A stretch of DNA of 63,366 bases, filler included, from Ministeria vibrans ATCC 50519 (lineage: Eukaryota > Protista > Filasterea), in assembly GCA_943704425.1 (NCBI GenBank). It is 5 parts of 5 records of this genome, joined end to end, with 100 filler letters (N's around TTAATTAATTAA, not from the genome) between each part and the next. Parts side by side here need not be neighbours in the genome. Positions count along the whole stretch, not along the records: positions 15,164 to 44,689 come from CALSCP010001236.1; 4 more parts are not named here. One strand, written 5' to 3'. Positions 1-49,936 of the stretch are shown in pieces. Within the stretch, counting starts at the first letter, position 1; each line of letters starts with the position of its first letter. The notes beneath the pieces are model-generated. The model was not told where the DNA came from, searched no databases, and was given only the letters and a program-made list of their open reading frames with translations. A program made the translations under genes and the position numbers.

Positions 1-72
<72 letters not shown>
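1..72. repeat. (GT)n microsatellite, probably intronic
   Basis: Perfect GT run from base 1, decaying to about 130. Confidence 0.95.
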
Positions 73-73
<1 letters not shown>

Positions 74-179
74 TTTGTGATGTGTATGTGTGTGTGCGAG
101 TGAGTGTGCGTGTGTGTAATGTGTGTGTCTGTTGGGAGTTTCTGTCCCTCACACTTGAATGTTTTTCGTTGCTTTACAG

Positions 180-15589: not shown

Positions 15590-17121
<1,532 letters not shown>

Positions 17122-18344
17122 ACGAAACCCGTTTCTGTGTCATCATAATACAAAAGAACAAGATTTTAATAATAATTTTATTAGTCCCAGGTTTTTCAGC
17201 AGTCATAGCAATGAAACTTGAAGGACATCATTCAACAAAGGTGAAAGAGTATTTAGTGTCACTACTTGATATGAAGAAAGGCTTATTTAAGACAATCCAT
17301 TCTGTAATCACTAATCAGTAATCAGCCATAAACTCATAATTGTTGACTGTTCGCAAAATCCTCTGGATTCACGTGATTTGTCATATACGATAAGAAAGAT
17401 AATCAAATCTACTGATGATTTTTAATTACCTGTTTGTTTCAGACTTTCAGTTTTATCAGTCATAAATCAAAATTGTCGATAAATCCTCCGGATTCACGTA
17501 ATTAGTTAGCTGACGTCGTGTCTTCGAGCTTCTCATTCGTCATCCCAGCTATCTCTGCGACGCTCCCCCTCGCTCCTTCGGTATGTCTTTTGCGGTCAAC
17601 TCACGCTTACCCTCAACTCTCCCGCACATCCACTATTGCCTCGCTCTGTGTCATTCTCCACCTACATCCCGCAAGAACCATCTCCCACATGCGCTTTTAT
17701 GCCTTGGCGGTCACGATTCATCGTCCTCCCGCCTTCATCTCTTAAATTTTTCTTTTCTTCTCCCAAACACACATCCAAACACAAACCTGAAAACCGCCCC
17801 TGGTGCTGCACGATGCCCCCCAGCGCGTGTTTGGGAGTGTACAGCTGTACACTACACTCTCCCCTTCTCAACAGCCGTATCGCTGTTCGTAACACACTTA
17901 AATTTCCCATAGCGTCTTTTATGTTTTATTTTTTTTGTGACTCGTCTGTAACCGCAACATGTACAAAAACGGCATTTGCATCTCTCTCTCGCAACATCGG
18001 CGCCTCTCCTCGATATGGCCACCTTCCAGCTTCCTGCAGCCCGCTGGCTCGCATGTAACTGTCAGCACTAGCTCCCGCGGGAGTTGTTTGAAACGCAAAC
18101 CAGCGTGATAAACACTCTCGATCATCTGCTCTCTCGTCGTCGCCCTTTGCATTTCTACTTCTCTGCCGAGCCCTACCCACTCAGTGTATATGCAGTGCTG
18201 CCATGGCATTCGCCGATTCCCCCGCATGGTCACCTGCAAGCGTTTTTTTCAACGATGGTTTTTGTAGTTTGTCTCTCACTTTGTTTTTCTTTCTCTCTCT
18301 CTGTTTCTTTCTGCTCTAGATTTGATTTGCACTTGAACATTGTG

Positions 18345-21300
18345 ATGAAACTGGCAACAATGCCTTCGATGGGCGTCTCAGTGATGGTCGCCCTTGTCGC
18401 CGCGGTCGTTTTCGTTGGCCCTGCTCAGGCGTGTACCACAGCGGGATGTGACAATGGTGGTACATGCTCCGTTACGTACACTCAAAAGCGGTCTACCGAT
18501 GCCCCGGTCGCCACTAAGACACTCGTCTTCACCAATGTCCCCCTGGCACCCCTCGTACTGGATATCGAATCCATTGCTGATTACAGTACGACGACCGAGC
18601 ACGTCACCCTCAGCGCCCCTGGCTACTCGCAGATATTCTTCCAAACGGGCTCGGATTGCTCAGTCGTCACCGATTCGACAACTCTTACGCTCGCTCAGGT
18701 ACTTGACGAAGCGATAAACCATCTAAGCTATTTCTAATCATTTTTTTTTTGTTGTTCATGTGTTTCTCATTTCCTAGGTCACCGCCATGCGCAGTAGTGC
18801 TGGATCAATTACTTTCACAGCAACGTTCTCCGCGAATGTGCAAGATTTCTGTCCCGGATCCTACATGGACGTGACGCTTTTCGCGGCAACTTGTCTGTGT
18901 ACCACCGGATTTGGCGGTGCCGATTGCTCCACTTATACGGGCTGCGACTCGAGCCCTTGCCAAAATCAGGGTACGTGTAACTCCGTCGCCAACCAGCAGA
19001 TCACCCGCGTCGATGCATACTACACCTCTGCGGGCTCGACTTTTACCTTCACCGCCCCTTATGTGGGCACCAGTGCCGCAACAATCACGGTCACCTCCAA
19101 CGCCGATCTAGGCATTGCCTCTGAAACATTCACTCTCACTGGTGCCGGTGGCTTCTCTTCCGTGTTTTACTCTTCCACCACTTCGGGTTACTCTGATTGC
19201 GGGACAAATATCGAATCGAAAACACTGACAGCTTCTCAGGTAAAATATCAGTACAACACAAGAGGAAAAACAATAATAGTAATACGTCTTTTTCGTTTCA
19301 AAATAGATGGCCTCCATAATTGTGAATGGGCAAATTAGTCTTACGGGGAAATTCTCATCGGCTGTGAACCAAGGCATCTGTACAAACCCCACTGTAACCG
19401 TCAAAATCGAACAGACGCCGGATGCGCTGTGTACCTGTCCTCCCGGCATCCAGGGTGACTTTTGCGAAATTGCGGGTGTCTGCTCGTCGCAACCATGCCA
19501 GAACGGCGCCACCTGCTCATTCACTGCCTCATCTTGGTCGTGTGACTGCCCTGTCGGCTTCACTGGCACAAATTGTGAGACGGACATCGACGAGTGCGCT
19601 TCATCGCCCTGCGCTCATGGCGCTACCTGTACCGACCTGACTGGCCAGTTTTCCTGTGCCTGCATCATTGGCTACACCGGAAACCGCTGTGAGATTGACA
19701 TTGACGAGTGCGCTTCGTCGCCTTGCAGCGCTGGCAGCACCTGCAACAATCACGTCTCCTTTTACAATTGCACGTGTTTACCAGGGGGCACAGGCAGCCA
19801 GTGCGAAACCTTTGACGAATGCTTCTCGTCGCCTTGCTCCAACGGTGGCACTTGCGACACCACATGGAGCTCGCCCGTGATCTCTCGTGCCCAAGTTTAC
19901 GAGCCCACAGTTCTCACGTTCACTTTCACCAACGTACCGCTCGGCCTCAGCCTAACCCTCGAAGCCGAGACCATGGCTGATTTTGGGGCGACATCCGAAT
20001 ACGCCACCATAAACTCAGTGCCGACCAATGCCGGTGCCACCAAAAACATGTTCGCGGTCGGTGCCAGTGATTGTGCCTTGATGAGTGACTCCATGGTGAT
20101 TTCAGCAGCGACGCTCGCCCAAATTCGCAGCTCCACCGGCACCGTGGTCTTCCGCGTCACGTTCCCGACTTCGGTCGACAACATTTGCAATGGTGTAGGT
20201 CAAGACTACCTCACGCTTCAACTCAAGGCATCGGATGACGTCTACGCTTGCACCTGTCCCTCCGAGTATTTTGGAAGCCAATGCGAGACGTTTCTTGGCG
20301 AGTGTGCGTCGCTTCGGTGCGAAAATGGAGCTACCTGCGTCGAGGACGGCAACCAACTGTTCACCAATTGCGTGTGCGCCTCCGGCTTCACCGGTGCCAA
20401 CTGTTCCGTCAACATTGACGACTGCACTTCGTCGCCTTGCAACTTTAATGGCACGTGCGTTGACGGTGTCGACTCGTACACTTGCAGTTGTCCCAGCGGC
20501 ACAACGGGTGCCCACTGTGAGACCGATTTTGACGAGTGCGCCTCCAATCCCTGCCATGCCGCCTCCACCTGTGTCGACGGCATCGGCTCGTTCTCTTGCA
20601 CGTGTCCCTTCGGTTCCACAGGTACCACCTGCACAGAGGTCGACTATTGTGCCTCTTCTCCTTGCTCAAACAGCGGCTCATGCGCTGTGCCATCCTCGTC
20701 ACCCGCTGTTGTCACCATCCCGGGCGCCAACGTTCAATTCAATGCTAACACTTTCACACGAACGGTCACCGGCCTCTTCCCCAACACGCCGTACACACTC
20801 GAAGTTCAAACCGAAATGGATGTCAGTAAGTAGACACCAAACTTTACGCCCCAGATGTAATTGATATTTTTGTATTTTTTTTTTCAGGCTGGCAAACAAC
20901 CCAGTTCATCACGTTTGCATCTAGCGGTGCCTCGCCTGCCTACTCGCACAATTTTTTTGTCTCCAATGCATTCGCCGACTGTTCGTTGCGTACCGAGTCC
21001 CAGACTCTCTCGATTGCACAGATGAGCTCGCTGATGGCCGGCTCGATGACCGAAGCGACACTTTACCTTACCGTTTCCCCCCCTGTTGATGGTAACTGGT
21101 GCACCACTACACAAAACACCATCACAATCACCATGACACCGACAGTCGTGGCCGGTTATGCCTGTACGTGTCTGCCCGTCTACGACGGGCTTCATTGCGA
21201 AACGTTTCTTGGCGAGTGTGCTTCCCAGCCTTGTCAGAACAACGGTAACTGTATCGAGGACGTCAACCGTCTGTTTGACTCGTGCAGCTGCCCTATCGGC

Positions 21301-24300
21301 TTTCTCGGCACCCACTGTGAGACGGACGTGAACGAGTGCTCTTCGTCGCCCTGCATGAACGGAGCAACCTGCCTCGACCAGGCTGGACAGCACAAGTGCA
21401 GCTGTGTCCCTGGGTACACTGGCATTTTCTGTGAGACGGACATTGACGAGTGTGCATCGTCGCCGTGCCAGAACGGTGGGATCTGTGCCGAGGGAATCAA
21501 CCACTTCACCTGCACTTGTCCTCTCGGTGGCAGCGGCTCTCTTTGCCAGTACTTTGACGAGTGTGGCTCGAGCCCGTGCCAGAACGGCGCCACCTGCACT
21601 GACGCGTACCAGCACACCGTGACCGAGGTGGATGTCCCTTACACTGGCAAGACTTTCCATTTTGTGTTTCCGGCCGTCCCGCAAGAATCTATGACGCTCG
21701 AGCTCTCTGCCATTGGTGACTTTGGGCTTGATTCCGAATACGTCATTCTCGATGTGGTGCCCGCCAATGCCGCCAGTAGCCTGCCGCAGAATATCTTTGA
21801 TCTTACGTCAAGCGACTGTCTCTTTATGTCTCACACCCTCGTGTTCACCAGAGATCAAGTAATTGCGATGACCAACAGTGCGGGCAACATTGCTCTCAAG
21901 ACGACGTTCTCCACGGCAGTCAACTTTGACTGCTCCAACCAACAAGACTATGTTAAGCTTGAGATGTACAACACCCCCGTGCCCGGCAGCAGCGGCAATC
22001 GTTGCACTTGCCCCTTTGGCTACACCGGTGAGCTTTGCGAGACGTTCCTTGGCGAATGTGTCTCCGCACCCTGTCTGAACAACGGCACATGTACCTTTGA
22101 GAGCGTCAGCGGCAACTTCACCGGCTGCACGTGCCCAACAGGCCTTGCTGGCTCATTCTGCGAGTCAAACGTGGACGAGTGCGCCTCATCTCCCTGCTCG
22201 AATGGGGCCACTTGCCTCGAGTCAGCCTCTGAACTGGACCTGTATGCGTGCGCTTGTGCGCTCGGCTACACCGGCGTCTTATGCGAGACCGAACTCGACG
22301 AGTGTCTCTCGTCACCCTGCTCCAATGGCGGCACGTGCACTGACGCGGTCGCCGGCTACACGTGTGCCTGCCCCGCTGGTGTGACTGGCGTCGTCTGTCA
22401 GATTTACGATGAGTGCGTGTCGTCACCCTGCTCCAACGGTGGTGTGTGCTCGTCGACAAGCGGCTATTCGTACACCGCACCGCGCCAGTACAACTCGTAT
22501 GGCTCTAATGTGCAAACATTTTTGTTTACGCACATTCCTCCCATTACACCCGCTACATTTGTCATTTCCGTGGAGGTGACGAGCACCGCGTCGCTCAAGG
22601 ACGCCGGCGAGTACATCACCATTACTGGCCCCAACAATTTCACGGTTGACGTGTTCGCCATTGCTAGCACCAAACCCGATTGTTCCGTGCGCACCCAGTC
22701 GCTGCAGATTCCCATCGATGACTTCAAGGCGATGCTTGCCGGTGGCGACTCTGTTTCGTTTAACATCTCGTACACGGGCGTTGCCAATGACGGCCCCTGT
22801 GCGCCCTACACCACCATGAAGCTGCTCGTGGTGCAGCCCGATGTGTATGCGTGTGCCTGTCCCGCAGGCTTCACCGGCCTCCAGTGCGGTGTCGACATTG
22901 ACGAGTGTGGCTCGTCGCCCTGTGAGGGAGTCCACAATCAGTGCACCGACGGCATCGCGTCGTACCAGTGCAATTGTGATATTGGCTACACCGGCTCGAC
23001 TTGCGAGACGAACATTGACGAGTGTGCCTCGTCGCCCTGCTCCAATGGTGCAACCTGCAACGACGCAGTCGATGGTTACTCATGCACATGCGCCAGTGGC
23101 TTTGTTGGCGATCACTGTGGCTCTGAGGTGATTGAGTGTGCCTCGTCGCCCTGCTCCAACGGTGCAACCTGTGTCGATGAAGTCGATGGATTCACTTGCA
23201 CGTGTGCCAGCGGTTTCCTCGGCACACAATGTGAAACGGAGGTCGTTGAGTGTGCATCAAGTCCTTGCTCAAACGGCGCCACGTGTGTCGATGCTGTCGA
23301 CGGCTTCACGTGTGTGTGTGCGGCCGGCTTCACTGCGACCCTATGTGACGTGGACATTGACGAGTGCGCGTCGTCGCCGTGTAGCAATGGGGCTACCTGT
23401 GATAACAACGTGGCCTCGTACGGGTGTACGTGCGCTGCGGGCTTTGCCGGCGCCCAATGTGTGCAAAATGTAAACGAGTGTCTTTCGGATCCCTGCGAAA
23501 ACGGCGCGGCGTGTTCCGACGGTGTCAATAGCTATGCGTGTGGCTGTCTGCCAGGCTACACCGGTGTCCATTGCGAGTCGGAGATTGACGAGTGTGCCTC
23601 GTCGCCGTGCGACCCTGTTGGCGCCAAGCCCTGCATGGATGCTGTCAATGGCTACTCGTGTCCCTGCAACCTTGGCTACACGGGCACACACTGTGAATCG
23701 GAAATCGACGAGTGTGCTTCGTCGCCCTGCACCAACGGTGCCGCCTGTGTCGATGATGTTGACGGATACGCGTGCACATGTGTTTCGGGTTACACCGGTG
23801 TGCACTGTGAGACGGACATTGACGAGTGCCAGTCGACAAGCACGCACGCATGCGACTTGGTGCGCTCACAGTGCTTCAACGAGCCCGGCGCCTACGAATG
23901 TAGCTGCCGAGTGGGCTTTTATGGCGCAGACACCACCAACGCGTACGCCAACTGTACTACGTGTACCAGCATTTCCAAGTGTTTTAGCGGACGCACATCG
24001 TGCTCTACCGCTATGGACAGCACGTGCTCACTATGTTCTATTGGCTACCGCTCTGTCGATCTGACCGGGGGCGAGACGCTGGACGAGTGCGAAAAGCTTG
24101 TGTACAACGACGCGCAGTTGGCACAGATGGTCTCGTTTGCACTGGGCGCCACTCTGAGCACGCTCATGGACAACTTGGCTTTGTTCATCGACATCGTTGT
24201 GCAGCACGTCAACACCTACATGAATGCACAGGCGGCGCTGGGTCGTCGACGCAACACTTGGACCAACGTCAACGCGACCGACGTTGGCGGATTCAGCAGC

Positions 24301-25630
24301 TCGGCCAGTTCCGTCGAATTGGTTGTGAACCAAAACGGCCAGAACGTGCCCGTGTCCGGCTCGGATGTTGCCAGTGCGATGTACGACGGCAACGGCCTGG
24401 CTGACTTTAACGTTATCACATCAGGTCTGGTAACGGACGTCACAACTGCCCCGCAGACGTCGGGACAGGGAAGTGGCTCGGGCGGCATGTCCATCATGCC
24501 CATTGCGGGGGCAGCCGCCGCCATTGCCATTTTGGCCATTATTGTCGCTGTGATCTTCTGGAGAAAGAAGAAGAGTGCCGAGGAGATCCACAAGATTAAC
24601 CAGGGTATTGCCCAGAAGCGCATGAGTGTCTGGGAAGGTAATTCGCAAAGAACAACAATAATCGGTGCAGATAAACGAACGCTGATGGGGGTGTATATGT
24701 CACTTGTCTAGGAATGGTGGAAGATGCTCTGGCGTTGGCACCGCATCACATGTCGTCGCGCGAGTCGGGTGCGGACGAAATGATCTTTATGGGAGACGAA
24801 TCGGACGGCGTGAGTGGCTCCACCGCCGTGAGCAATCCGGCTTTCATGGGCGACCTTTCAGGCATGGATGACGATGACGATGACGACCTGATGGTCATGG
24901 ACTCGGCCCTTGGATTACCGCGCCGTCAGTCGCGCATAATGAACAACGTGGAGCGGCGTGCGCGTGCCGCGTCGCCCGTTGAGTCGAACAACCCCTCCTT
25001 TGAGATCAGCCAGTACGCCGAACCGCACGGCCACCTCGACGACAACATCTACGGTAACGCAGTGGAGTCGTCGGAGACATACGAGAATGTTGCCAACCAC
25101 ATGTATGGTAACAACGAGACAATGGCAAATGAAGAGGCTTCGATGTACGCGGATGTGCCGCCTGCCCTTGATGGAGCAATTGTGGACATCCCCGACGACG
25201 AATTGCTGATTGACGACGACGGAGAGGAGGAGCGCATGGGCGACCTGCGCTCCGAGGCCCGTCAGCTGTACAGCATGGAGCAGACACTCCGCTCGCACTC
25301 ACAGGCTGAGGAAGATGAGGTTCGCGACTCGGCTGCAGAGCAACTCGCGGAGGTCAAACAAAAGAAGGTAAACACTGAAATGAGCCCATTCTTTGTCTCA
25401 TGACGCTGCTATTTTTTTGTTCAGGTACATCTTGTACGTCGAATGTCTTCTCTGAAGCGCATTGAATTGGGCACGTATGTTGGGCCAACGGTAAGAAGCT
25501 AAAAGAGAGCGTTGGTCGATTGAAAGGTGGCACTGATCCGTTTTGCTTTCCTGTGTACCTGTAGATAAAGGAGTCTCAGACGGATGTCGAGCAAAATGAG
25601 TATGAAGAGATTTTCAACGATCTGCTGTGA
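18345..25630 (+). CDS. Single-pass receptor: 27 EGF modules (6 with inserted ~110-aa domains), Cys-rich juxtamembrane segment, TM, Tyr-rich tail; 7 exons
   Basis: Exons 18345-18698, 18778-19239, 19308-20825, 20888-24637, 24712-25367, 25425-25490, 25565-25630 in frame. Signal peptide; DIDEC..PC.NG.TC repeats; TM IAGAAAAIAILAIIVAVIFW followed by RKKK. Confidence 0.88.
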
Positions 25631-26945: not shown

Positions 26946-27377
26946 TTTTCGAGGATGGTTGGAAAATCAATCTATGTACATTGTATTTATTGTGTGTGTG
27001 TACGTAAAACAAACCGGAAGAAAGGGAACCTTTTTCTGTCTTTCAAAGAATTTTTTGCTTCAGTTAAAGTGTTAGACTAAAATGGCATTGTGACAGACTT
27101 TGTAGTCTTAAGAAGTAGTAGAACCTAGATAGTCTTATTTACGAGTCTTTAAGACTGATTTTCTAATTATTGCTGAACGTAAACGCTGAAAGCTTGATTA
27201 AGTATCATGTGACCAGACACTGTGAACTGTGAAGTGTGACCTGAGTCACCTGACATTTTCAAGCCTACCCGCCACTCTGATTGAACTCAGACAGATATTT
27301 GACCATTACCCCAATTTTGATTTGGAAATTTCGGTTATTATTATTATTATTTTTTTCTTTTTTTAAATTTATTGATC

Positions 27378-28019
27378 ATGGGAAGTGTCTTCGGCAAAAT
27401 TGACGTTGAAGTGCCACGATACGAAGTGGTTCGCAGCTACGACGGCTGGGAGATCCGCGAATACCCCGCTGCGGTTGGCGCCTCGTACACGTACGTGCCC
27501 AAGACGTCAGACAGCGCCCAATCTGGCGGCGAAGGCTTCCGGCCGCTTGCGCGTTACATCGGTGCCTTCCCTGGGGCTAAGGCGGAGAACATGACGAGAA
27601 GCGGCGAGAGCGAGAAGCCCGCGGCGATCTCCATGACGGCACCCGTGATGACATCGACGGAGAAAGTCAAACCGCAAGCGATCTCGATGACAGCACCCGT
27701 TGTCACCGAGAAGGCCGCACGCTCCGAGACAATGACCTTCATCCTGCCATCCAGCATCACCATTGAGACTGCGCCCACTCCGACAAATGCGGACATTCGC
27801 ATTCACGAAATCGCTCCTCGCCGATTGGCCGTCCTCGAGTTTAGCGGTTCCGCAACGAGTGCGCTCGTCGCCGAACGCACCGACGCACTATTAACCGGCA
27901 TCAAATCTCAAGGTCTGACTCCTGTGGAAAGCGCCGTTGTACAGCTTGCGCAATTCAATCCGCCCTGGACAATTTCCCGTTACCGAACTAATCACGTCTC
28001 AATCGAGCTGGAAAAATGA
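27378..28019 (+). CDS. SOUL heme-binding family protein
   Basis: MGSVFGK..EVPRYEVV, WEIREYP, GFRPLARYI, ISMTAPV (twice), MTFILPS, FNPPWT..RTNHV; intronless. Confidence 0.92.
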   Translation: MGSVFGKIDVEVPRYEVVRSYDGWEIREYPAAVGASYTYVPKTSDSAQSGGEGFRPLARYIGAFPGAKAENMTRSGESEKPAAISMTAPVMTSTEKVKPQAISMTAPVVTEKAARSETMTFILPSSITIETAPTPTNADIRIHEIAPRRLAVLEFSGSATSALVAERTDALLTGIKSQGLTPVESAVVQLAQFNPPWTISRYRTNHVSIELEK

Positions 28020-30491: not shown

Positions 30492-33400
30492 CTCTCTCTT
30501 TCTATCACCTGACACTCCCCCTGTATTACTTTACTTTGTCAGCTCCCACTGAGGGCATGGGTTATTCCCTCACTTTCTCTACGGGTCCTCTGGGGACTGG
30601 AGACGCGTCGAATCTTGTCATTACACAGGTAATAGTCACAAAAATATATTACAATACTGTAACATCTTGTAGGGCGCCACGTCGACTGTGCACATCATGA
30701 TTAAATTCCGAATGGAAACAGTTGGTGTGACCAATTGTGCAACTGTCAATGCCTCGGTGGCCACCGCGTTGGCCGCGCCGACGTCTTCTTGGGCGGGCGA
30801 TTACAACGACGGCACCGCCCTCACCTTGGTTGAGCCTTCCGCATCGACCATTGATGCCTACCAGGCGAGCAATGCTGGCATCACAAAGTACACCACACCC
30901 GCGGGCAACTGTGGGTATTCGGCGAACGTCGTGGCGAAAATCACGGGCTCAGTCACCTTGTCAAACCTTCTCATCGGCGCTCCTTTTGACACACTCTTTG
31001 ACACGTCCGTGATTTACGACTACTTCTACAAGTTTACCAATGCCGAGCTGGGCAACAACTTGTTTGACAGCTCCGTCACCATCTTCTGGCCGCCCGGCGA
31101 AACACCAGGCAGTATCTCCTGGTCGGCTCCGCCGGTGTACCCGGTCCCAGCCTACTTCAACCTGCAGCTCGCCAGTCTGCCCTACACCGGCTCCTGTCCC
31201 AGCGGTGGCACCCTCTCGAGCAGCGGCTACGTTTGCAAGCGACAGGATGGTCGCGACGTGTTTCAGTTGGCCACTCGCATCGCGTGGGAGGGAGAGTACT
31301 CATGCACCGGCGACGTCTGTAGCGGCTCCATGGCCGTGGCCACCACACTACTTCAGGGTGTTGGATTTGAAGCAAACTTTGCCAACAGCAACACTGCCCT
31401 GCAAGTGATCCCCGCGACAAGCGCAACCCCGTGGAATCTTTATCTGCGAATTTTGCTGAGCTCGACCGTGTCATGTGCCGCCTCGCCTGCCTATACCTTG
31501 CCCGCCAGCTCGGCGACTTTGACCCTGACCACAGCCGAGAAGGGCGTGCTCACAAACGTGACGCCTCTCGATACCATCGTTGCACAGCCCGTGTCCGTCT
31601 CGCAGAGTAACCCGGGTGTTGTCTGGGGCGTCTCGCCCGTCAGTGGCTCGAACTGTATCCTCTCCATCGAGCTTACCATTCCCATGGTGGGCCCGGCTAC
31701 GCTCACCAACGTTGAGTTTCGTGCGCCACTCGCGACGTCGCCGTTCTTTGGCCTCTCAGACCCCACTCCCTTCACCTGGACCATGGCCAACCGTGGCATC
31801 TCCTTCCTCGTCGACTCCACCAATACAACTGGTGCGTCGGCGATGACCGTCGACGTGATACCATACCAGCCTCTCGCACGTCTGGGTGGCCGTCCCTCCT
31901 TCACCAAGGGCCAACTCGAGTTGTACGACACCACCACAAGTTCGTATGCCACTGCCTGTATCACCGACCTTACCGTGAGCGATGCCATTGTCGCGTGCCG
32001 CACCATGGGTCTGCCCAGCGCTTCGGCCACCATCAAGAGCTTTGGTGAGGTTCCCAACCTGGGAGCACCCAAGTTTGGCTCGCTCAACTGCGCCGGCAAC
32101 GAAGCCACTATTGCCGATTGCTCCTACGCAAGCGGTAGCGCGTCGGCTAACTGCCTTTCGGCGGGTATCGTTTGCCTGGCGGCCCCTGCCGGGACGACCC
32201 AGGGCGACTTGAGCCTCATTGGTGGCACTACGTCGCGTAACGGCCGACTAGGACTCTGGTACGACGACGAGTGGTCGTCGGTGTGTGCGGAAAATTTCAA
32301 CGATGCTGATGGCATCGTTGCCTGTCGTCAACTCGGCTACACGTCCGTTGAGCAGACTGTCATCACCACCGTGTACACAGGGGGGCAACTGAACACACCC
32401 CCGTCGCTCAATCCTATTGTGCTGCAGGGCATGGACTGTAGCTCAACTCCCTCCGCCGCGACCCTTTTGGGCTGCAATCATGGCACGCTCGGCCAATCGG
32501 GCACCTGCGTGAAGCCTTGGGATGCGATGCTCCAGTGCAACCTGCCGCCCTCCAACGACCCCGTTGTTACTACACTTCTGTCGGAGCAAACCTTTGGCGT
32601 CATCGAGGCACGCATCGACGACCCCAACGCCGCCAACTTGGTCGTGGGATTTATCTGCACGTCGGGCTTCGACAGCAACGCTGCCAAGGTGGTGTGTCGT
32701 GAACATGGCTTACCAACCACTCACGCGCGTTCCGTCAGCTCCTCGGGCACCTTTCCGCTTGGGGTCAACGGAACGATTATCATGAGCAACATTGTGTGCA
32801 CCGGTGTCGAAGATGCTCTCACCGAATGTACCTACAGTCAGTCAGCGGGCACCTGTGTGGGCGAGGCCGACTATGCCGCTGTCGTGTGTACCGACATTCC
32901 TGTGCAGCCTCTTACCGGCACCGAGGCTGACTACTCGCTGCGCTTGGTTGATGGTGTCGCCGGTGTCAGCGGTAGCCTTCAAATGATCGTCTCGGGCACG
33001 TGGGGCCCAGTCTGCGCCCAATTTTGGACACAAGAGCCCACCAAGTTTTCCAATCCCACCGTCGCCTGTCGTCAACTTGGCCTTGGCACCTCGAACGCCG
33101 CTACCATCAACGGATATGGCTCGGCCGCTGCACCCGTCATGGGCGACATTCAATGCGCGGGCACGGAGGCGAGTCTTTTCGCGTGTGATCACCAGCTGCC
33201 GGGTGTCTGCCAGGTGTGGGAGCAGGTTGCGGTCACGTGCGGCGGTTCGACCGTCGCTGCCCTTCCGCCCGCTCCCACCGTCAGTCAGATTCCTTGCAAT
33301 TCACCCTGTGGCGATATTATTCTGGGTGGTGAGGGCGCCACCGCCACGAGCGGGCGCATTCAACCCTTCTACGAGGGTCAAATGGGCACGGTGTGCGCTG

Positions 33401-36400
33401 ACGGCTTTGACATCGAAGATGCCATTGTGGCCTGTCGCCAGCTTGGTATTCCCACCGACTCACCCTCATTTGAATTGGCCGAACCTACCTTTGGTGTGCT
33501 GAACAGCACCATTCCCATTTGGATGGCTGATCTGAGTTGCACCGGAAGCGAGGCTCGTCTGCAGGACTGTCCCTTCTTCGAATGGGGCGTCAACTCGTGT
33601 GCGCACACCGAAGACATTGCCATCTCCTGTGTGTCGCCGTCTACCGCCTCGTATCCGTTTGCTACGGGCGAAACTGGCTCCGTGCGACTTGTGGGAGGTC
33701 CCGATCACACCGAAGGGCGGGTGGAAATCCTCGTGAACAACGTATGGGGCACCGCCTGCAGCCAGGGTTGGCTCTTTGGCGCCCCCGCACCCCAGGTGCT
33801 CTGTCGTCAGCTGGGTCTCAACTGGACGGACGCCATTGGCATTGAGGGCACCTATGCCAACGGCACGGGTCCCATTCAAATGTCGAACACCATGTGTCTC
33901 GGCACCGAATTGACCATTCTCGATTGTCCCCACGACACCGACCCAAAGGCGTGCGAACATCTTCTTGACGTTGGCGTTCAGTGTCGCGGCTCCGACGTGG
34001 CACCCGAGCCTATTCTCACGTACATCCCTCAGGCGTGCTCGCCCATGTCGTCCGCACCGTCGCTGGTTGCGACGCCCAATGAACCCGACGGCACCTTCCG
34101 TCTGGTGGGCTGTACCGAAACCTTTGAGGGAAACCTCGAAATGTCGTACAATGGCACGTGGGGCTCGGTGTGCGACGACGTCGGCTTTGGCATCAACGAC
34201 GGCCGAGCGAACGCGCGTGTGATTTGCAACGCGATGGGACTGCCAAGTAGCGAGGCTATTGCTCTCTCGCTCGCACCATTTCCCTCGCCCTACTTGGTCA
34301 CGCCCGACTTTGTGTTGGATGACGTGGAGTGCTGGGGCAATGAGAACGACGTCATCACGGAGTGTCGTCACTTCCCGCTTGGCTCGTCCGATTGCGCAAG
34401 CAACGAAGTGGTGGGCCTTATGTGCCTCGGCGTCGTCGAGAGCTTTGGTGCCTACGTCGCTCCTTCGTCGCGCGTTCCCGTCGAGAGTACGCTCGCGCCC
34501 ATTGAGACAATTCCGGCAGGGACGCTTCGTTTGGCCGGCGGCGCAAACCCGTCCGAGGGCTACCTCGAGATCCTCCAGGGAGGCTTTTGGGGAACCGTGT
34601 GTGACGACGGCTGGTTTGACGCCAGCGACAACTCCACCAACCCCATCAATGCGCGTGTGGCCTGCTTCCAAATGGGTCTCCCGTCGACCGATGCAACCAT
34701 ATTCACAGCGCAAACGGTGCCCAACTCGGCACAAGAGTTTGGACCGCAGCCCAACACGGCCATCTATCTGGCCAACGTTCAGTGTAACGGCGCTGAGTTT
34801 TCCCTGCTGCAGTGCCAGCACACCAACGGCGATAGCTGCACGCATGAAGAGGACGTGGCACTGCGATGTGGCGGTGAGCTGGAGCCGTCGATTCGTGCGC
34901 CTCTCGTCACCACACCTGGTCCGCTGCAGTCGACCGTCGAGGCGAACCCAACCTTACCAGCGGGCACTGTGCGACTGGTAAATGGCCCGTCGCCTAACAC
35001 CGGCACAGTCGAGGTGGTTCACAACGGACAGTGGGGCACTGTGTGCGGTGACTACGGTTCGCAGGAGAATGCCATCAAGATTGCGCAGGTTATTTGTGAC
35101 CAATTGGGCTTGCCGGCGACACAGGCGCGGATGTTGCAGCCTAACCCGTATCCACCGGTGCAGGACTACCTGCCCATCTGGATCGACGATGCCGTCTGCA
35201 ACGGATTTGAAGCGTCCATCAGCGACTGTCAGCATGCGCCCTTTGGTGTACACGATTGCATCCACGTGGAGGATGCGGCTGTGGAGTGTCTCGGCGAGGT
35301 GTTTCCGTCGGACCGCATGCCGCCGACAACGCAGGCAGCCGAAACGACCTTCTTCGCGCCCGTCGTCACTTTTGGTGTACCAGGCACGCTTCGTCTGGTG
35401 GACGGAGGTCACCCGAGCGAGGGAATTCTCGAGGTGTTCCTGAACAATACCTGGGGCACCGTCTGCGACGATGGTTGGGGTCCTACTCAGGGCGGCTTCT
35501 CGTCGGGCGTCAACGCTGAAATTGTCTGTCACCAGCTTGGCTTTGGTGCCACGGACGCCATGTGGGGCTCGTCGGCGTTGTTTGGAGAGGGTGTGGCTGC
35601 TTCGCTGCTGCTGCCTATCAACCTTCAGGGTGCTGCATGCAACGGTGCCGAGAACGAGCTGATCGAGTGTGCGCCGCTGAACAGTGTGTGTTCGCACTCT
35701 GAAGATGTCGCTGTCAAGTGTGGCGGCGCGGCACTCGCGTCGTTCCGCGAGCCCATTACGACGCAGATTGCGCCTGAGATGACCTCAGTGAAACCCTGTG
35801 TGAACCCCGGCAACAACGGCAATGCTCGCTTGGTGGGCGGCGCCGTTGGCTCCGAGGGTCTCCTTGAGGTGTATTACTGTGGCGAATGGGGCTCGGTGTG
35901 CGACGACGGCTTTAGCAACGAGAACGCCGAAGTTATTTGCAATCAGCTTGGCTTCACCGACTATGTTGCGACCTGGTCGGGCAGTGCTTCGTTTGGTCAG
36001 AGCTCGGGGCCCATCGTGCTGGACGATGTCACTTGTTCGGGACACGAGGCGTCCCTCCTGCAGTGTGTCCACTCGCCCGTGTTCACCACGGACTGCAGTC
36101 ACTCCGAGGATGTCTCCATTGTGTGTACCGTGCCCACGACTCACTTGGGCGCGGCCGAGACCTCAGCAGCGGTCGCGAGCAGCATTCCCGGCACGAGTGG
36201 CTTTCCCGTGCCGAGCGGCACCGAATTTGCCGTGGTCGACTTCCACTTGAACAACTACGCGCCGCAGCAAACGGTGGTGCGTGTGGGTACCCTGGTCACC
36301 TGGGTGAACACCGACTCAACTCTGTCGGGCATTAGCCATCAGATCTTTGAGAATACGGGTTTGTTCACGTCGAAGGTGTTTGCTCCCGGCGAGACGTGGT

Positions 36401-39400
36401 CGTACCTCTTTGAGACGGCCGGCACGTTTCCCTACACGTGTCTGTTGCACCCGCAAACTATGACAGGTAGCGAGATTGTTGTCACGCCTGACGGCACCGT
36501 TGCGTTGGAGGGTTGCAGCTCGAGTCCGTGCCAGAACAGCGGCTTCTGCATCGACCTGGGCGGCAACTCGATTCTGTGCGCGTGTACCAACCCAGACTAC
36601 ACCGGTGCGTTTTGCGAGTCGCTGATTGATCCCTGTGACCCAAACCCATGTCAGGGAGGTGGTACGTGTACATCGACGAGTGCCACCGCGTACACCTGCC
36701 AGTGTCCCAGCGGCTTTGTGGGCGCAGTGTGTTCCATCAATGCGAACGAGTGCACGTCCAACCCGTGCAACAATGGTGTGTGTACGGACGGCGTGGACGG
36801 CTACACATGTACCTGTCACACGGGCTTTACAGGTGCCGGCTGTCTGGAGAACATCGATGACTGTGTCTCGTCGCCATGTGCCAATGGCGGAACGTGCAAC
36901 GACGGCATCAACGAGTATGGTTGTTCCTGCACCCTGGGGTTCCAGGGCACCCATTGCGACCAGCAAGTGATTGAGTGTAGCTCGAACCCCTGCATGAACG
37001 GCGGCACATGCTCCGACGGCACCAACAGCTACACGTGTACGTGTGCCCCTGGATTCACCGGCGTCACATGCGCCGTGGAAGTGATTGAGTGTGGCTCGTC
37101 GCCCTGCCAGAATGGTGCGACTTGTGTCGACAGTGTAAACACCTACACGTGTCAATGTGTGCCCGGCTATGTGGGGCGTCTGTGTGATCAGGACATTGAC
37201 GAGTGTCTGTCGTTGCCGTGTCAGAACGGCGGTACGTGTACCGACGTCGTCAATGGCTTTGCGTGCTCTTGTCCCACCGGCTTTGCCGGCTTCAATTGTG
37301 GTCAGAACATCAACGAGTGTGCGTCGCAGCCCTGCCGCAACGGTGGCACATGCCTCGACGGCATTGACCGATTTACGTGCAACTGTGCCGGCACGGGTTT
37401 TGGTGGTGCGACGTGTGACGCCGCGCAGGATGCCTGCTCGTCGAATCCTTGTTCGAATGCGGCGCAGTGCACGTCGACGCTCGGTGTGTGGTCGTGTGAC
37501 TGTACCAACACGGGTTTCAGTGGCGCAACCTGCAGCGTGGCCGTCAACGAGTGTGCATCCTCGCCGTGCGCCAATGCGGGCACCTGTTTTGACCATGTCA
37601 ATTCGTACGCGTGCGCCTGTGTCTTTGGCTATGCCGGCGCCAACTGTCTGACCAACGTAGACGATTGCGTAAATAGCCCTTGTGCTAACGGTGGTACCTG
37701 TGTGGATGGTATCAATTCGGTCGTATGCACGTGCGCGGCGGGATTCACGGGCACCCTGTGCAACGTCAACATTGACGAGTGTGCATCGTCTCCATGCCAC
37801 AACCAGGGTGTGTGCACGGATGGTAACAACAAATTCACGTGTGACTGTTCCTCGACGGCCTTTGGCGGCACCCTGTGTGACCAGGCGTCGGATGCGTGCT
37901 CGAGCAACCCGTGTCTGAACAGTGGTGTGTGCAGTACGGCTACGGGCAGCTGGCAATGTGATTGCGCCGGTACGGGCTTTACCGGCACGAGCTGTGCGGT
38001 GGACATTGACGAGTGTGCGTCGTCGCCCTGCGAGCATGGCTCGACCTGCTCGAATCTGGTGAATGCATTTGCGTGCATCTGTACCGCAGGTTATGCGGGC
38101 GCGTCGTGCCAAGTGGACGTTGACGAGTGTCTATCGGCACCCTGTCGCAATGTGGGTACCTGCGTGGACGGAGTGAATGGCTTTACGTGTGTGTGCGCGG
38201 CGGGCTTCTCGGGTTCGATGTGTGCCGTGAATGTGGACGAGTGCAACTCCCAGCCGTGTCAGAATGGAGCCGCATGTGTTGATGGAATCGACCGGTTCAC
38301 GTGCAACTGTGCGGGTACCGGTTTTGGCGGTGGACTTTGTGACGTGCAGCAGGACCAGTGTGCGTCACAGCCGTGTGCAAATGGGGGAGCCTGCTCGTCG
38401 GTGGGCCCCACGTACCTGTGCAACTGTGCCAACACTGGGTTTAGCGGCACCAACTGTGAGGTGGACAGCAACGAGTGTGCGTCGCAGCCGTGTCTCAATG
38501 GCGCTACGTGTGTGGACAATGCGAACGCGTGGTCGTGCGTATGCGCGTCGGGCTTTGGCGGAGTGACGTGCGCGCAGGATCTGAACGAGTGCCAGTCGAC
38601 GCCCTGTCGCAACGGCGCGACCTGTGTGGATGCCGTCAATGGCTACTCGTGCACTTGCGTCGCTGGTTTCACAGGATCACTTTGCCAGGCGGACATTGAC
38701 GAGTGTGTGTCGCAGCCGTGCGAGAATGGTGCCACTTGCCAAAATGGTGTGGGTCAGTTTGAGTGTTTCTGCGCCGCTGGTTTTAGCGGCGTGACGTGTG
38801 CGAGCGATAATGACGAGTGTCTGAGCATGCCCTGTCGCAACCAGGGTACGTGTACCGACGTTGCGGGGTCCTTTTCGTGTGCGTGCGTCGTCGGATTTGA
38901 GGGTACACGATGCGAGACGAACACGGACGAGTGTGCAAGTCGACCGTGTGCCAACGATGGCATTTGTAGCGACCAGGTGAACGGATTCACGTGTGTGTGT
39001 GGTGCGGGCTTTACCGGTGTCGTGTGCGAGTCAGAGACGGACGAGTGCGCAGTGGGACCTTGTCACCACGGTGGTACGTGTGTTTTGGGTGCGGGAACGC
39101 AGTTTACGTGTGTGTGCAGCGCCGGCTACACTGGCAGTTTGTGCCAGGTGAACATTGACGATTGTCAGTCGGCGCCGTGTGCGGGTGTGGGCAGTCGCTG
39201 TGACGATGGTGTGGCATCTTACGTGTGTGTGTGTGCAGTCGGCTTGGCGGGCACCAATTGCATGCAGAACGTGGACGAGTGCGCGAGCGCTCCGTGTTTC
39301 AATGGTGGTACCTGCGTGGACGCGCTGAATGGTTTCACATGTACCTGTGCATCGGGATTTTCGGGGATGTTCTGCGACGGAGATGTGAACGAGTGTGCGT

Positions 39401-41660
39401 CGACACCTTGCCGCAATGGTGGTACATGTACGGATGCGGTGAATGATGTGGTGTGCACGTGTGCGGCGGGCTGGACGGGCCAGAGGTGCGCGGCAAGCAT
39501 TGCCGAGTGCTTGTCGGACCCATGCCTGAACGGTGGAACGTGCGTTGATGGGGCCAACGCTTTCACGTGCCTGTGCAAAGGTGGCTACACGGGAGCGCAG
39601 TGCGAGTCAGACGTGAACGAGTGTGCCTCGTCGCCGTGCGCCGCGGGTGCCACCTGTCTCAACATGATCAATGCCTTTTCGTGTACCTGCGTGGCGGGCA
39701 TGACGGGCCCGATGTGTGACGTAGACATTGACGAGTGTGCCTCGTCGCCTTGTATGTCGGGTGGAACGTGCGCGCAACAGTCGGGTGCGCTGAATAGCTA
39801 CGCGTGCACGTGCATGAGTGGCTTTGCGGGAAGCATGTGCGAGACGAACATCAACGATTGTGCGTCGCAACCGTGCGAGAGTGGTGGTATTTGTAATGAT
39901 GGAGTTGACTCATACACGTGCGACTGCAGCCAAGTGGGCCGTGGCGGTACTCATTGCGAGACGGTGATTGACGCGTGTACGTCGAACCCGTGCGACAACG
40001 GCGGCCAGTGCACGGCGACGGGCACGACACTGTTTGTGTGTGCCTGTGGCAACTCGGGCTTCACGGGTGTCACTTGCTCGGATGCCATTGACGAGTGTGC
40101 GTCGACACCGTGCCAGAATGGCGCCAGTTGTGTGGATGGAACGGCATCGCACACATGTGTGTGTGCAGCTGGCTACGAGGGCACGCTGTGCGCGACCAAC
40201 ACCGACGAGTGTGCGTCGACGCCTTGTCTCAATGGCGCGACGTGCACCGACGGTGTTGCCTCGGTGGTGTGCACATGTGCGTCAGGCTTCACGGGCACGA
40301 CGTGCGATGCGAATGTGCTCGAGTGTGCGTCCACGCCATGTCTCAATGGGGGTGTGTGTACTGATGCTGTCGACGGGTTCACGTGTGCATGCCTCTCGGG
40401 CTTCACCGGCATTTTGTGTGCGAACGATGTGGATGAGTGTGCGTCGTCACCGTGTCAGTTTGGTGGCACGTGTACCGACGGAGAGGACAAGTTTACGTGT
40501 GCGTGTACATCGGGACGCATTGGAGTGTCGTGCGAGACGACCATCAATGACTGTGTGTCGAGCCCCTGTCAAAATGGGGGGAATTGTGTGTCCGGTGCGG
40601 CTGGTACGTGGTCGTGCAGCTGTGCTGCGGGCTACACGGGTGCGTCGTGCGAGAACAACATTAACGAGTGTGCCTCGATGCCGTGCGCCAATGGCGGACA
40701 GTGTGCGGACAAAGTGAATGGTTTTACATGTACGTGTGTCGCGGGCTACACGGGCTCGGCGTGTTTGACAAACATAAACGACTGTACGTCGACCCCATGC
40801 CAGAATGGCGGTAGCTGCCAAGATGGCGTTGCGTCGTACACATGTGTGTGTGTCGTTGGCTATGCGGGGACAATGTGTGAGACGGACGTTGATGATTGCG
40901 CCACAGCACAGTGTGCCTCAAGCGCGACGTGCGTGGACGCTGTCAATGCCTATACGTGCACCTGTGCCGCAGGCACGACGGGCACATTGTGTACCGAGGA
41001 TGTGCTCGAGTGTGCGAGCTTCCCGTGTTCCAACGGCGCCACGTGTCATGAAGGTGCCAATACGTTCACGTGCTCCTGTGCAGCGGGTTTTACCGGAGCG
41101 TTGTGCGACGTTAACATTAATGACTGTCTGTCGGTGACGTGCCAGAATGGTGGCACGTGCAACGACGGGCTCACGAGCTTTGTGTGTGCGTGTGCAAACG
41201 GCTACACGGGTTTAAACTGCGAGACGAACATTAACGAGTGTGTGCCACTGCCGTGCAGTAACGGCGGCACGTGCACCGACGGCATTGGTTCGTTTGTGTG
41301 TGCCTGTCGCGAAGGCTTCACCGGCACAAGTTGCTCGGCAGTCATCAACAACTGCCTGTCCAACCCATGTGCGTCGGGTTCGACGTGCACGTCGACTCCC
41401 ACAAGCTACACGTGTGCCTGTGTCGAGGGCAAAATTGGATCCCAATGCGAGCTGGTAGGCGTCAAGTCGACCGGTGGAACCATTCGAGTGGGCAATGTGG
41501 TGGTGACGTTTGATGCGGGCGTGTTCTCGAGCGATGTTCAGGTGGATGTGACTCTCTCGACGCTCCCCGTCAATGCGCAGATCGGTGTCACCGAGACACC
41601 ATCGCCCCAGACTGTTGTTCACATTTCGACCCCGTCCTTTTCGGGTGCATGGTACGACAA

Positions 41661-41743
<83 letters not shown>

Positions 41744-42262
41744 AAGAAACAAAGTGATAGAGAGAGAGAAGGGAGAAAGAAACAAAGTGATAGAGAGAGA
41801 GAAGGGAGAAAGAAACAAAGTGATAGAGAGAGGAGGGAGAAAGAAGCAAAGTGATAGAGAGAGGAGGGAGAATGGGGGAGGGAGGGACGACCGATGATAA
41901 TTACATTGATTGCTAATAATGATTGTGTGTGTGTGGGGGGTTTTTTGTTTGTAATCATTTTTGCGGGTTTAGGGGTGGCAAGGCCAAAGTGACCATTATC
42001 TACACGGCATCGCCCACCAGCGGCACCTCATGGTCCCTGTTTTACTCGACCTCCGAGTCAGGGCCCTACACTGTTGTGTCGAACATCTTTTCGCGACGTC
42101 GTGCGCTTTCCAACTGTATTTCAACGTCAACTGCCGCCTGTGGGTTTGTCTCGGGCTCAGGCTATAGTACAGGCGGTGTGCCCGCCAGCGGCACCTCAAA
42201 CAGTGCAAGTACGCGCAATACTACCCCCACTCCCCTGCAACTCTATCTGATTGACATAATAA

Positions 42263-42879: not shown

Positions 42880-44186
42880 TTAGTCGTGCAGAGGATGGAG
42901 TGCGTGGTAGAGCACAAGCATGGCATTGGACGCCTCGGCTAAAAGATCATCGACAAAGGCACCCGACTTGGCCGAGATGAAGAGAGAGCGCGCGGAAAAT
43001 TCCTCGGCGAGCGCATCGGCCTCGTCTTGCGTGACGGAACGCCCGTCCAGGTCAATTTTGTTGCCGACAAGCATGATGACAGTGTCGGCGTGCGTCTCGC
43101 GCCGCAGTTCCCCCAGATACGACCGACACGCCGTGAATGACGACCGCTCAGTGACGTCGTAGACCACAAGGATTACAGGCGCCCCCTATATCAGATTTTA
43201 AGAATAATTATTATAATTATTTATAGTGAGGAAGGAGATGTGGGGCAAGTTATTTCATGAGCGCACTGCAACGGTGTTTTTTTACCTTGTAGTACATTTG
43301 CCACATTGCGCGATAGTTCTCCTGGCCAGCGACGTCCCACACGTCGAGGGCAAGGCGAATGCCGTCGGCACAGGGAACAATTTTTCGTTGGAAGCACACG
43401 CCAATGGTGGTTTGGCAGGCGGGATCAAAGCGAGAATGGACAACACGCTCGAGAAGCGACGTCTTTCCCACACCTCCCTGACCCAGAAGCACCATTTTGC
43501 TGACCACATCGCAGACCCCCACGGCATCACCGGCGGGCAAGGCAAAGAGAAACTTGTCCTTGTCGGCGGTGGCTGCACCTGCACCGAGCAGGGGAGCAGC
43601 GACCTCCGAGTCGACGGGTGCCGCCGCATTCACAGCGGTCACATCACGTTTCTTGGCGGCCATTCGTGCGCCTGACATGCCCGCAAGGTTGCACGTCTCT
43701 CGGTGTGCCAGGGCAGTCTCTTGGACGTCCGCAACGGTGCGCAGCCACATGTTAACGCCGTCGTCGTTCTCCGTCGCGAAAATGCGATGGGTTTCGTTGC
43801 CCATCGACTTGCCCGTCGCGTCGCAATGCTCGCAGGTCACTTGAAACGCGTGCGGTTTCCCTGTGTGCTTCTTGGCTCCGAAAACGCGAAAGCGAGCTCG
43901 AAGAAGACCGCCCGCACTGGAAGACGGAGGAGGAAAAAAGAAGAAGAAAAAAAAAGGCACAACACAGAAAGACAAGAAGGAAATGAGGTATCTGACACGG
44001 AGGAGGAGTGGAAGGACGCATGGGAAAGGAGAGAGGGCGTTGGGGCGATGGCTGCTGCGGTGCGTACGAGTCGTAGGATTCGAGAATGCCATCGTCATAC
44101 AGACAAATGTATCGTTTGCGCCACTGCTTCAAATGCTGGCTTTTCTTCAGCAGCGTGGCCTCCAACAGTGTGTTGGAGGACGACAT
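42880..44186 (-). CDS. PH domain-Rab-like small GTPase fusion; 3 exons
   Basis: PH-like LLKKSQHLKQWRKRYICL...HAFQV...FATENDDGVNMWLRTV; G boxes GQGGVGKT, TIG, WDVAGQE, NKID, SAK. Confidence 0.85.
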
Positions 44187-44561
44187 TGAATACACTTGAA
44201 GCAAGCTGCAAGCACTAAATAATTTTTTTAATATTGTCTATTCACTATTGATTATTTTGAAGTTTGAACTTCTTCTTCTTAGAGTTCATGTTATTAGTTA
44301 CTATCAGTCGCAAACGAAATGGACGCCACGCACCGCAGAACCACTCCTCAATCTCTAAGCTACAGATTCGTCGACTATTTTGCTTACGTGGTTATTCATT
44401 CTGAATTTAAATAAAATAGGAATATTAATTTCATCTGGATTCTGCAGAGGCCGAGGCACTTCGTGCAGAAAAATACCCTAGCTAGGTAGGACTATAAAAC
44501 TTCAGAGACAATCGTTCGCATTCTCTCTTTCTTTCTCGTTCTCTTTGTGTGGGCATGTGGT

Positions 44562-44577
44562 GGTGTTAAAAAACACC
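44562..44577 (-). promoter_or_regulatory. Histone mRNA 3' stem-loop
   Basis: Minus strand reads CCAACCT-GGTGTT-TTTT-AACACC-ACCAC: 6-bp stem, 4-nt U loop, 56 nt after the H3 stop. Confidence 0.85.
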
Positions 44578-44633
44578 AGGTTGGTTTGTTGTGAAGCTGA
44601 TGGAGCAGTTGCTGGGAAATCAAAGAACTTGAT

Positions 44634-44689
44634 TTACGCGCGCTCACCACGGATGCGGCGGGCCAGCTGGATGTCCTTGGGCATGATGG
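44634..44689 (-). CDS. H3: Histone H3, C-terminal fragment (rest in gap)
   Basis: Translates IMPKDIQLARRIRGERA*. Confidence 0.95.
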
Positions 44690-44789
44690 NNNNNNNNNNN
44701 NNNNNNNNNNNNNNNNNNNNNNNNNNNNNNNNNTTAATTAATTAANNNNNNNNNNNNNNNNNNNNNNNNNNNNNNNNNNNNNNNNNNNN
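44690..44789. other. Assembly linker
   Basis: N44-TTAATTAATTAA-N44. Confidence 0.97.
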
Positions 44790-44922
<133 letters not shown>

Positions 44923-44975
44923 AAAGAATGAAAATAAAAATAATTATTATTAAATTTTTGGTTTGGATTCGTACT

Positions 44976-46168
44976 CTGGAAACACTCCTTTGACTTTGGC
45001 CAAATACACCTTTTTTAAAGAGTGGCTCTCAATGTCCTGTTGGATTTCACGAGCGGCAGATTTGGTGCGAGCGAGCATAAGAAGACCTATTGGGAACCAT
45101 TGATATAAGAGTTACACTCACTGGGCATTTAACGGATCGAGTTGCACATGTCATTGGGGTCATTTCTCTTATTCCCCCTCCCTTTATCTTTTGTCTGTGT
45201 TGTACCTGACGTAAGACGGTCCAGTCGATGGATCGCTGTAGACAAGAACCATAAAAATAATAAAAAAATTTAATGGATAAAAACACGACACACATTGAGC
45301 CATTACTGTTCAGTTGGTCCAAGCCCATTTCGTCGCGAAGAACCCCCAAAAGAGTATTGTGGCGGAATCGACCGGCCGCATGGATGGGAATGGACGCTGG
45401 CTTGTCCACCACGACATACTTGTCGTCCGAATGCACAATTGTGATCTGTGGCACAAACAGCGAAATGAGTAAATTTCCTTTTTTTTTTTTTTTTTTTTTT
45501 TTTTTTNNNNNNNNNNGAAAAAAATTCGACGAAAAAATTCTCGGCCTTGTCACGCTCGAAGGGGTTCACCTTTCCGTTTCCGATGGTCGGTTCGTGTTTG
45601 TGAGTCAGATGACTGATAGTGTCGCCGTTTTTCAGAATGTGATTTGGCGAAACGCGTTTTCCATTGACCCGAATGCGACCCAACTCAATCGCTTTATCAT
45701 AGTACTCGCGAGGATGCGCCACGAATTCCTCCGAGAACATGTCGATGAGGGTGCGGTTGAACCACCGCCCTTTGGCATGTGCGTTGTATTCGCTCCAGTA
45801 CGGATGAATACATCGCTGACCTGCAAAGTACATAAATTATAACAATATTATTGTGACATTCTCCAGTTGATTTTTTTGTCATTTGTCTCTTGGAAGAGAG
45901 CCGAACCTGAGCGAACAAACCGGACAATTTCATCGCCATTGCTGTTGTCGGATGCTTTGAATTTCTGCAGATGAAATCAATGTGAGTTTGTTGTATAATG
46001 ATAATCATTGTCAAAGATGGGAATCTGTACCTTTGTCTCCTGCTCGATGCGCGCCTCTCTAGCAGGCACTTGGTCTGTCTCAGATGCTCGGCGTTTCAAG
46101 GAGGCCCTCGGTGGCGCAGCTTCAGCGCTGCGCTCCTCAGAGGAGGAGGAAGGACCCGCTTCGCTCAT
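44976..46168 (-). CDS. RPUSD2: RluA-family pseudouridine synthase (RPUSD2/RIB2-like); 3' end lost in gap
   Basis: AKGRW, S4-like GRIRVNG, HKHEP, VVDKPASIPIH..GRFRHNT, catalytic HRLDRLTSG, KVYLAKVKGVFP. Confidence 0.88.

Positions 46169-49889: not shown

Positions 49890-49936
<47 letters not shown>

Follow-up and report, generated by a model that had tools for sequence, protein, structure and literature searches.

Predicted jelly-roll domains nested in the Cys3-Cys4 loop of EGF modules in a putative membrane protein of Ministeria vibrans

We describe here a gene of the filasterean Ministeria vibrans ATCC 50519 (assembly GCA_943704425.1) in which six EGF modules are each interrupted by an inserted domain. 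The window, by which we mean the whole stretch of DNA analysed, has 63,366 nucleotides (nt) and joins five parts of this genome with filler between them; the gene lies in the part from CALSCP010001236.1, which occupies positions 15,164 to 44,689. Its reading frame starts with a signal peptide, continues through 27 EGF modules and ends, after a transmembrane helix, in an acidic tail, and on this layout the product is predicted to be a type I membrane protein. The four long exons were translated one by one and the Cys spacings listed for each exon. The intron-bearing inserts 1, 2 and 4 were handled as exon pieces, and the whole-unit model and searches were based on units 6, 14 and 18, which have no intron. 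The coordinates of all features are given in Table 1.

The canonical spacing C-5-C-6-C-9..12-C-2-C-9-C is seen in 21 of the 27 modules. The other six, EGFs 1, 2, 6, 10, 14 and 18, are broken between Cys3 and Cys4 (C3 and C4), where the gap is 115-135 residues long and contains exactly two extra Cys (Ca and Cb), the arrangement being C3-(64..78)-Ca-(38..40)-Cb-(14..24)-C4. From EGF 2 on, three plain EGFs come after every loaded one. A preliminary description of this DNA had named the same six modules, and the Cys spacing agrees with it; the limits it gave, 18432-22890, correspond to the stretch from C1 of EGF 1 to C6 of EGF 18 (18432-22887).

The split modules are recognisable as EGF-like domains (PF00008 and relatives), both by their six-Cys spacing, C-5-C-6-C (insert) C-2-C-9-C, and by profile. 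In split EGF 6 positions 1-18 of Pfam EGF fall on residues 1-17 and positions 20-32 of EGF_2 on residues 143-155, and Pfam EGF is matched in 52 of 58 intact split units taken from the whole genome. Many of the plain EGFs match EGF_CA, but the split ones do not conform to calcium-binding EGF (PF07645), which is defined by D/N-x-D/N-E/Q-C ahead of C1 and C3-x-D/N-x4-F/Y-x-C4, since the insert replaces the consensus between C3 and C4. The linker before a split EGF is one residue shorter, giving an inter-EGF Cys gap of 6 as against 7.

Transcript contigs from public runs, which include seawater and marine metatranscriptomes, were aligned to 18300-24290, intron 4 and the tail lying outside that stretch. 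They remove introns 1-3 and nothing else. One contig of 3008 nt covers 18319-18696, 18776-19237, 19305-20825 and 20888-21464, another is unbroken across 21447-23036, and inserts 3 and 5 are covered too by contigs from a marine metagenome sequenced as a polyA RNA-Seq library. The contig edges at introns 1 and 2 are shifted by 2 nt, which is the usual AG/AG alignment ambiguity. As the contigs are spliced they are of RNA origin, and thus the gene is expressed and its inserts belong to the exons, a point for which the preliminary description had suggested a check by RNA-seq. Introns 1 and 2 are both in phase 0 and fall in one alignment column of the inserts, as had been noted from the sequence, and both are removed in the contigs; the position of intron 3 within its insert is a different one.

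The window and the contigs (four runs) differ at nine positions, all of them at 18629-19376, within the first ~1.05 kb of coding sequence. Four of the differences are non-synonymous and five synonymous, and they are sited at the tip farthest from the membrane, in split EGFs 1 and 2, while the remaining ~4.6 kb compared with transcript contigs has none. Such a cluster may reflect polymorphism of the tip or a block of recombination.

The six inserts align as paralogues with 21-34% identity and share the motifs TF.FT..P, ADxG..SEY.T and DC, in accord with the earlier view of them as divergent copies of one domain. A profile made from the six has at least 86 matches on ~20 contigs of the 29.7-Mb genome, with E down to 1e-49. 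In the loci retrieved, the two EGF halves (C..PC.NGG.C and C.C..G..G..C) stand in frame on either side of 55 of the 64 full-length matches, and most of the other full-length matches are interrupted by introns, gaps or the ends of open reading frames. All eight Cys are invariant in an alignment of the 58 intact units, in which mean column identity is 26%, and conservation within the insert falls chiefly on residues of the core and the disulfide. Divergence among the paralogues is high, the median of their best identities being 40%. With eight invariant Cys in 58 units and 86 matches in the genome, chance is excluded.

With regard to known families, Pfam gave only EGF families on the exons of the gene, the inserts being without a match, and at E<=1 on the 58 units no family recurred over the insert. 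The insert and the bacterial homologues described below are likewise without a model in NCBIfam. A sequence search of the PDB with the insert profile gave chance-level matches only (the best, at E 0.05, being a viral protein that is unrelated), the ESM Atlas, queried with one insert and one bacterial homologue, gave only sub-threshold leads with scores <=0.88, and a word-indexed homologue search with insert 5, by a length-limited method that needs shared 5-mers, gave no match, a blank to which little weight attaches.

To find homologues, 1.84 billion representatives were searched exhaustively with HMMER, which gave 143 proteins at E<=1e-3; over the whole library E goes down to 2e-76 for multi-copy proteins and is ~5e-11 for single copies. 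Those of the 143 that have a named source come from bacterial metagenome-assembled genomes (MAGs), where they are giant proteins of the surface or secreted ones, and in one instance from a diatom MAG. Examples, from Acidobacteriota, Planctomycetaceae and Polarisedimenticolia, are proteins annotated as 'subtilisin family', 'choice-of-anchor D' and 'CARDB'; others are carriers with dockerin, beta-helix, PPC or M64 domains, and an LRR protein, MGA1825508.1, with nine tandem copies. In these homologues the domain is free or in tandem and has the same two Cys, and among the 143 proteins no EGF was found except in short fragments of M. vibrans' own genes. The consensus of 221 segments from 136 other proteins is the eukaryotic motif: a hydrophobic strand, P, GDLG..E, DC and V-D..C. 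We conclude that the inserts are one real and widespread family that is missing from Pfam and NCBIfam and that in this genome is nearly always nested in EGF. We propose that it be defined as a 'GDLG..E / DC / second Cys' jelly-roll, a definition to which all six inserts conform on their sequences.

The diatom MAG protein, KAL3934899.1, has four tandem free-standing copies. The linkers after the first two carry a C-x-C that is reminiscent of C4-x-C5 of EGF, although a full EGF is absent.

The fold was predicted with AlphaFold2, which on a single sequence gave a predicted local distance difference test (pLDDT) of 46 and, with the 58-unit alignment, modelled split EGF 6 with a pLDDT of 92.5 and a predicted template modelling score of 0.81. 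The model has a sandwich of ~nine strands and one helix between the EGF halves, and short strands at 11-14 (around C3) and 142-145 (around C4). The halves, which the preliminary description had proposed should be modelled together, were modelled and scored as one EGF with pLDDT 82-87. Scores of the structural matches plateau at a level that the tool calls common, and so they point to a fold class only; CBM35 (carbohydrate-binding module, CBM) chains are among the matches of this model, and no laminin L4 or LF chain is among the 50 best. The insert is predicted to be a compact jelly-roll beta-sandwich of CBM35-like fold class, with Ca and Cb forming one internal disulfide. The EGF probably closes around it, as suggested by model confidence, the positions of the short strands, the half-profile matches and the invariance of the Cys. 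The earlier picture of beta-sandwich inserts displayed sideways on a rod is a fair one, given the modelled sandwich, a real super-repeat and the predicted type I membrane topology.

The preliminary description placed passenger domains in EGF 1 and then in every fourth EGF. A period of four is kept by the present gene and by its C904 and C1933 paralogues, but not by C1769, where the loaded EGFs are adjacent or one apart. As C1769 breaks the period, the spacing is best seen as a product of block duplication and not as a fixed requirement. In a quick tree 56 of 58 of the genome's own copies are on one side of a split, together with two outsiders (support 0.77). There seems to have been a single capture into EGF, after which blocks of four EGFs, and also whole genes, were duplicated, a reading of the sequences made with a short domain and modest support.

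Two of the paralogous loci have features of their own. C1769 has at 43400-54000 an open frame of 3641 residues with a near-exact internal tandem duplication of ~5.56 kb, seen as pairs of matches with identical scores 5559 bases apart. C904 has ~25 nested units in 18.5 kb (49600-68100) on one strand, mostly in the form of one loaded and two or three plain EGFs, and this cluster is probably one or two giant genes.

Table 1. Features of the split-EGF gene, in positions of the window
Feature	Position	Strand	Basis and remarks
Gene	18345-25403	+	Five exons: 18345-18698, 18778-19239, 19307-20825, 20888-24637 (long exons) and 24712-25403 (exon 5, inferred)
Start codon and signal peptide (29 residues), exon 1	18345-18431	+	Hydrophobic N-terminus; transcript contigs begin at or before 18319
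Split EGF 1	18432-18927	+	C1-C3 18432-18467; insert 1 18468-18698 and 18778-18891; C4-C6 18892-18927; Cys spacing, alignment
Intron 1, within insert 1	18699-18777	+	79 nt, GT..AG, phase 0; absent from contigs of X1, X2, X6
Split EGF 2	18943-19465	+	Insert 2 18979-19239 and 19307-19429; Cys spacing, alignment
Intron 2, within insert 2	19240-19306	+	67 nt, phase 0; absent from contigs of X1, X2, X6, X8
Plain EGFs 3-5	19481-19804	+	Cys spacing; Pfam EGF, hEGF, EGF_CA
Split EGF 6 (modelled unit)	19820-20284	+	Insert 3 19856-20248; AlphaFold2, Pfam half matches
Plain EGFs 7-9	20303-20632	+	Cys spacing, Pfam
Split EGF 10	20648-21198	+	Insert 4 20684-20825 and 20888-21162; Cys spacing, alignment
Intron 3, within insert 4	20826-20887	+	62 nt, GTAAGT..CAG, phase 1; absent from X1 and X2 contigs
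Plain EGFs 11-13	21217-21546	+	Cys spacing, Pfam
Split EGF 14	21562-22038	+	Insert 5 21598-22002; Cys spacing, alignment; unbroken in X1 and X8 contigs
Plain EGFs 15-17	22057-22398	+	Cys spacing, Pfam
Split EGF 18	22414-22887	+	Insert 6 22450-22851; Cys spacing, alignment; unbroken in X1 contig
Plain EGFs 19-27, mostly calcium-binding type, last atypical	22906-23955	+	Cys spacing, Pfam
Cys-rich stretch and juxtamembrane region (~130 residues); ~180 residues in all from last EGF to membrane; RRR site	23956-24489	+	Sequence
Transmembrane helix, then basic stop-transfer stretch	24490-24561	+	Sequence
Intron 4 (inferred), exon 4 to tail exon	24638-24711	+	74 nt, GT..AG, phase 1; sequence only
Exon 5, acidic cytoplasmic tail to stop codon	24712-25403	+	Translation; two NPxF, YENV/YADV

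The textbook case of a domain nested in a tiny disulfide-knotted module is the L4 domain, of ~180 residues, in the LE modules of laminin and perlecan. The preliminary description did not recognise the present architecture from animal EGF proteins, but there is an animal precedent: L4 in laminin's alpha and gamma chains and in perlecan is set between Cys3 and Cys4 of an LE module and has a CBM35-like fold (PMC5338690; PMC6266596). In perlecan domain III, where L4 and LE modules alternate, a stiff rod has globular domains repeatedly inserted in its EGF-like motifs (Schulze et al. 1995 via PMC6266596). The LF domain of laminin beta is also a CBM35-like sandwich that interrupts an EGF-type array and leaves its packing undisturbed (PMC5338690). 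A literature search for 'split EGF' by that name gave split-EGFP papers only.

Like laminin L4 the insert appears to be a beta-sandwich of CBM35-like class in the Cys3-Cys4 loop, with the module kept in a tandem EGF-type rod, and like perlecan domain III the gene has repeated globular domains along such a rod. Perlecan, however, is a secreted animal basement-membrane proteoglycan with Laminin_B inserts, whereas here there is a period of one loaded and three plain modules and another insert family. The case of LF is also different, as LF follows a truncated LE and has an extra helical region, while here the Cys3-Cys4 loop is used. The carbohydrate-binding modules CBM6, CBM35 and CBM36 are among the closest known systems, but none of the 58 units matches a Pfam CBM family at E<=1 and we do not place the inserts in any of the three.

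Our preferred reading, to which we give a probability of about 60%, is that the product of the gene is a type I membrane protein with an EGF rod bearing six jelly rolls, nested in Cys3-Cys4 hairpins, that were captured once and then duplicated and that serve as multivalent binding modules. Closure of the EGF around its insert would make the domain project sideways from the rod. The nested domains would be the binding modules, for which glycans are the obvious candidate ligands in view of the fold class and the company that the domain keeps in bacteria. Arrays of calcium-binding EGFs are stiff rods, and six regularly spaced copies on such a rod might give multivalent adhesion or recognition of particles or prey, in line with the avidity or pattern receptor that the preliminary description had supposed; with the loaded EGFs four modules apart we estimate that the sandwiches would be ~10 nm apart. 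The cytoplasmic tail (24562-25403), of ~255 residues of which 25 are from exon 4 and 230 from the inferred exon 5, is strongly acidic and includes a run of seven Asp. Its NPxF and YENV/YADV motifs could couple the protein to endocytosis or to phosphotyrosine signalling, and the genome has at least 25 SH2 matches. Neither exon 5 nor the juxtamembrane region has a Pfam match.

The main rival to this binding role, possible though distinctly less probable, is that the nested domains are architectural, acting as spacers or kinks or in lateral packing, and so giving shape to a cell coat or matrix. A part of this kind has been considered for L4 and LF of laminin, and L4 may well have it too. The fold class and the insertion loop are those of L4, for which no ligand is known so far (PMC5338690), and the predominance of core and disulfide residues among conserved positions fits a structural part. 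However the bacterial members of the family sit beside PPC, dockerin, LRR and CARDB modules, which have binding or anchoring roles, and the high divergence of the paralogues fits diversified binding surfaces. Neither of these points is decisive.

The units could also be true L4-in-LE modules, with inserts that are divergent members of Laminin_B (PF00052). The insertion point is identical and the fold class is shared, but we think membership improbable. Laminin_B was not matched in the exons (E<=0.01), in the 58 units (E<=1) or anywhere in the genome, and EGF_laminin (PF00053) has no match in the gene, although there are a few LE modules elsewhere in the genome. The hosts are canonical six-Cys EGFs and not the eight-Cys LE in which L4 is found. 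The insert is shorter than L4 at ~125 residues and has its own conserved disulfide and motif, and it has free-standing bacterial relatives; the structural matches, as noted, lack L4 and LF. Laminin also differs in that the protein described here has a membrane anchor and carries the domain six times, with at least 86 matches in the genome as a whole. On their sequences the units appear to work like L4-in-LE without being members of that group. A deeper connection, in which both are one invention, with a bacterial-type CBM35-like jelly roll captured in a unicellular ancestor of animals, expanded here and remodelled in animals, is a speculation that we consider unlikely.

A Notch-like receptor, in which a ligand bound to the EGF rod would trigger juxtamembrane cleavage, would account for the long EGF array, the juxtamembrane region with its basic RRR site, the single transmembrane helix and the long tail, but Pfam found no LNR, NOD, ANK or other Notch-specific family, and the tail is acidic and without a recognisable domain, which makes this reading very doubtful. 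That the inserts are missing from the mature product, or that the gene is a pseudogene, has nothing but the unusual interruption of the EGFs in its favour and hardly merits consideration, as the transcript contigs retain every insert and drop only three short GT..AG introns, the frames are open, the Cys and core are conserved over 58 paralogues and the fold is predicted with high confidence; splicing out of the inserts is rejected at the RNA level.

Upstream of the EGF gene there is an adenosylhomocysteinase gene of several exons (15600-17121, plus strand), and a 3.2-kb metagenome contig in ENA has this gene followed by the first two exons of the EGF gene in the same order, with a few residue differences. 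Downstream there are a gene of the SOUL haem-binding family (27372-28019, plus strand; Pfam E 3e-33) and an open reading frame with a GxxGxGKT P-loop motif (43250-44098, minus strand), both of which look like ordinary neighbours. Between these lies a single open frame of 3689 residues (30688-41757, plus strand) with 11 SRCR domains and then at least 40 EGF modules, none of them split. The frame enters a (GA)n microsatellite, which is translated as ERERER, and its true 3' end is probably spliced or elsewhere.

In a search of the genome for marker families we found three integrin-beta genes, many SH2 domains, Runt and T-box genes and the few LE modules already mentioned, and no light-harvesting proteins. 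Given the lineages in which these families occur, the set suggests a unicellular holozoan other than a choanoflagellate. Among named HSP70 hits the best are metazoan, with 70-73% identity.

The nesting principle is known from laminin and perlecan, and what is new is the insert family, the six-Cys host, the periodicity of one loaded and three plain modules and the large lineage-specific expansion. Nesting of a domain in a tiny disulfide-knotted module is rare, and L4 has no known function. In the present case a different jelly-roll family uses that loop in that kind of module, apparently independently, and does so in a single-celled organism related to animals, with integrins, SH2, Runt and T-box genes but without Laminin_B, and this bears on the tolerance of the EGF fold and on surface proteins before animals. 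If the two did turn out to be one invention, the protist family would still show how L4 domains arose, and possibly what they do. The family definition fills a gap in Pfam and NCBIfam for a domain that many giant surface proteins of bacteria carry, and as the genes are expressed in the sea they offer an approachable system for the study of jelly rolls that would stand out sideways from EGF rods.

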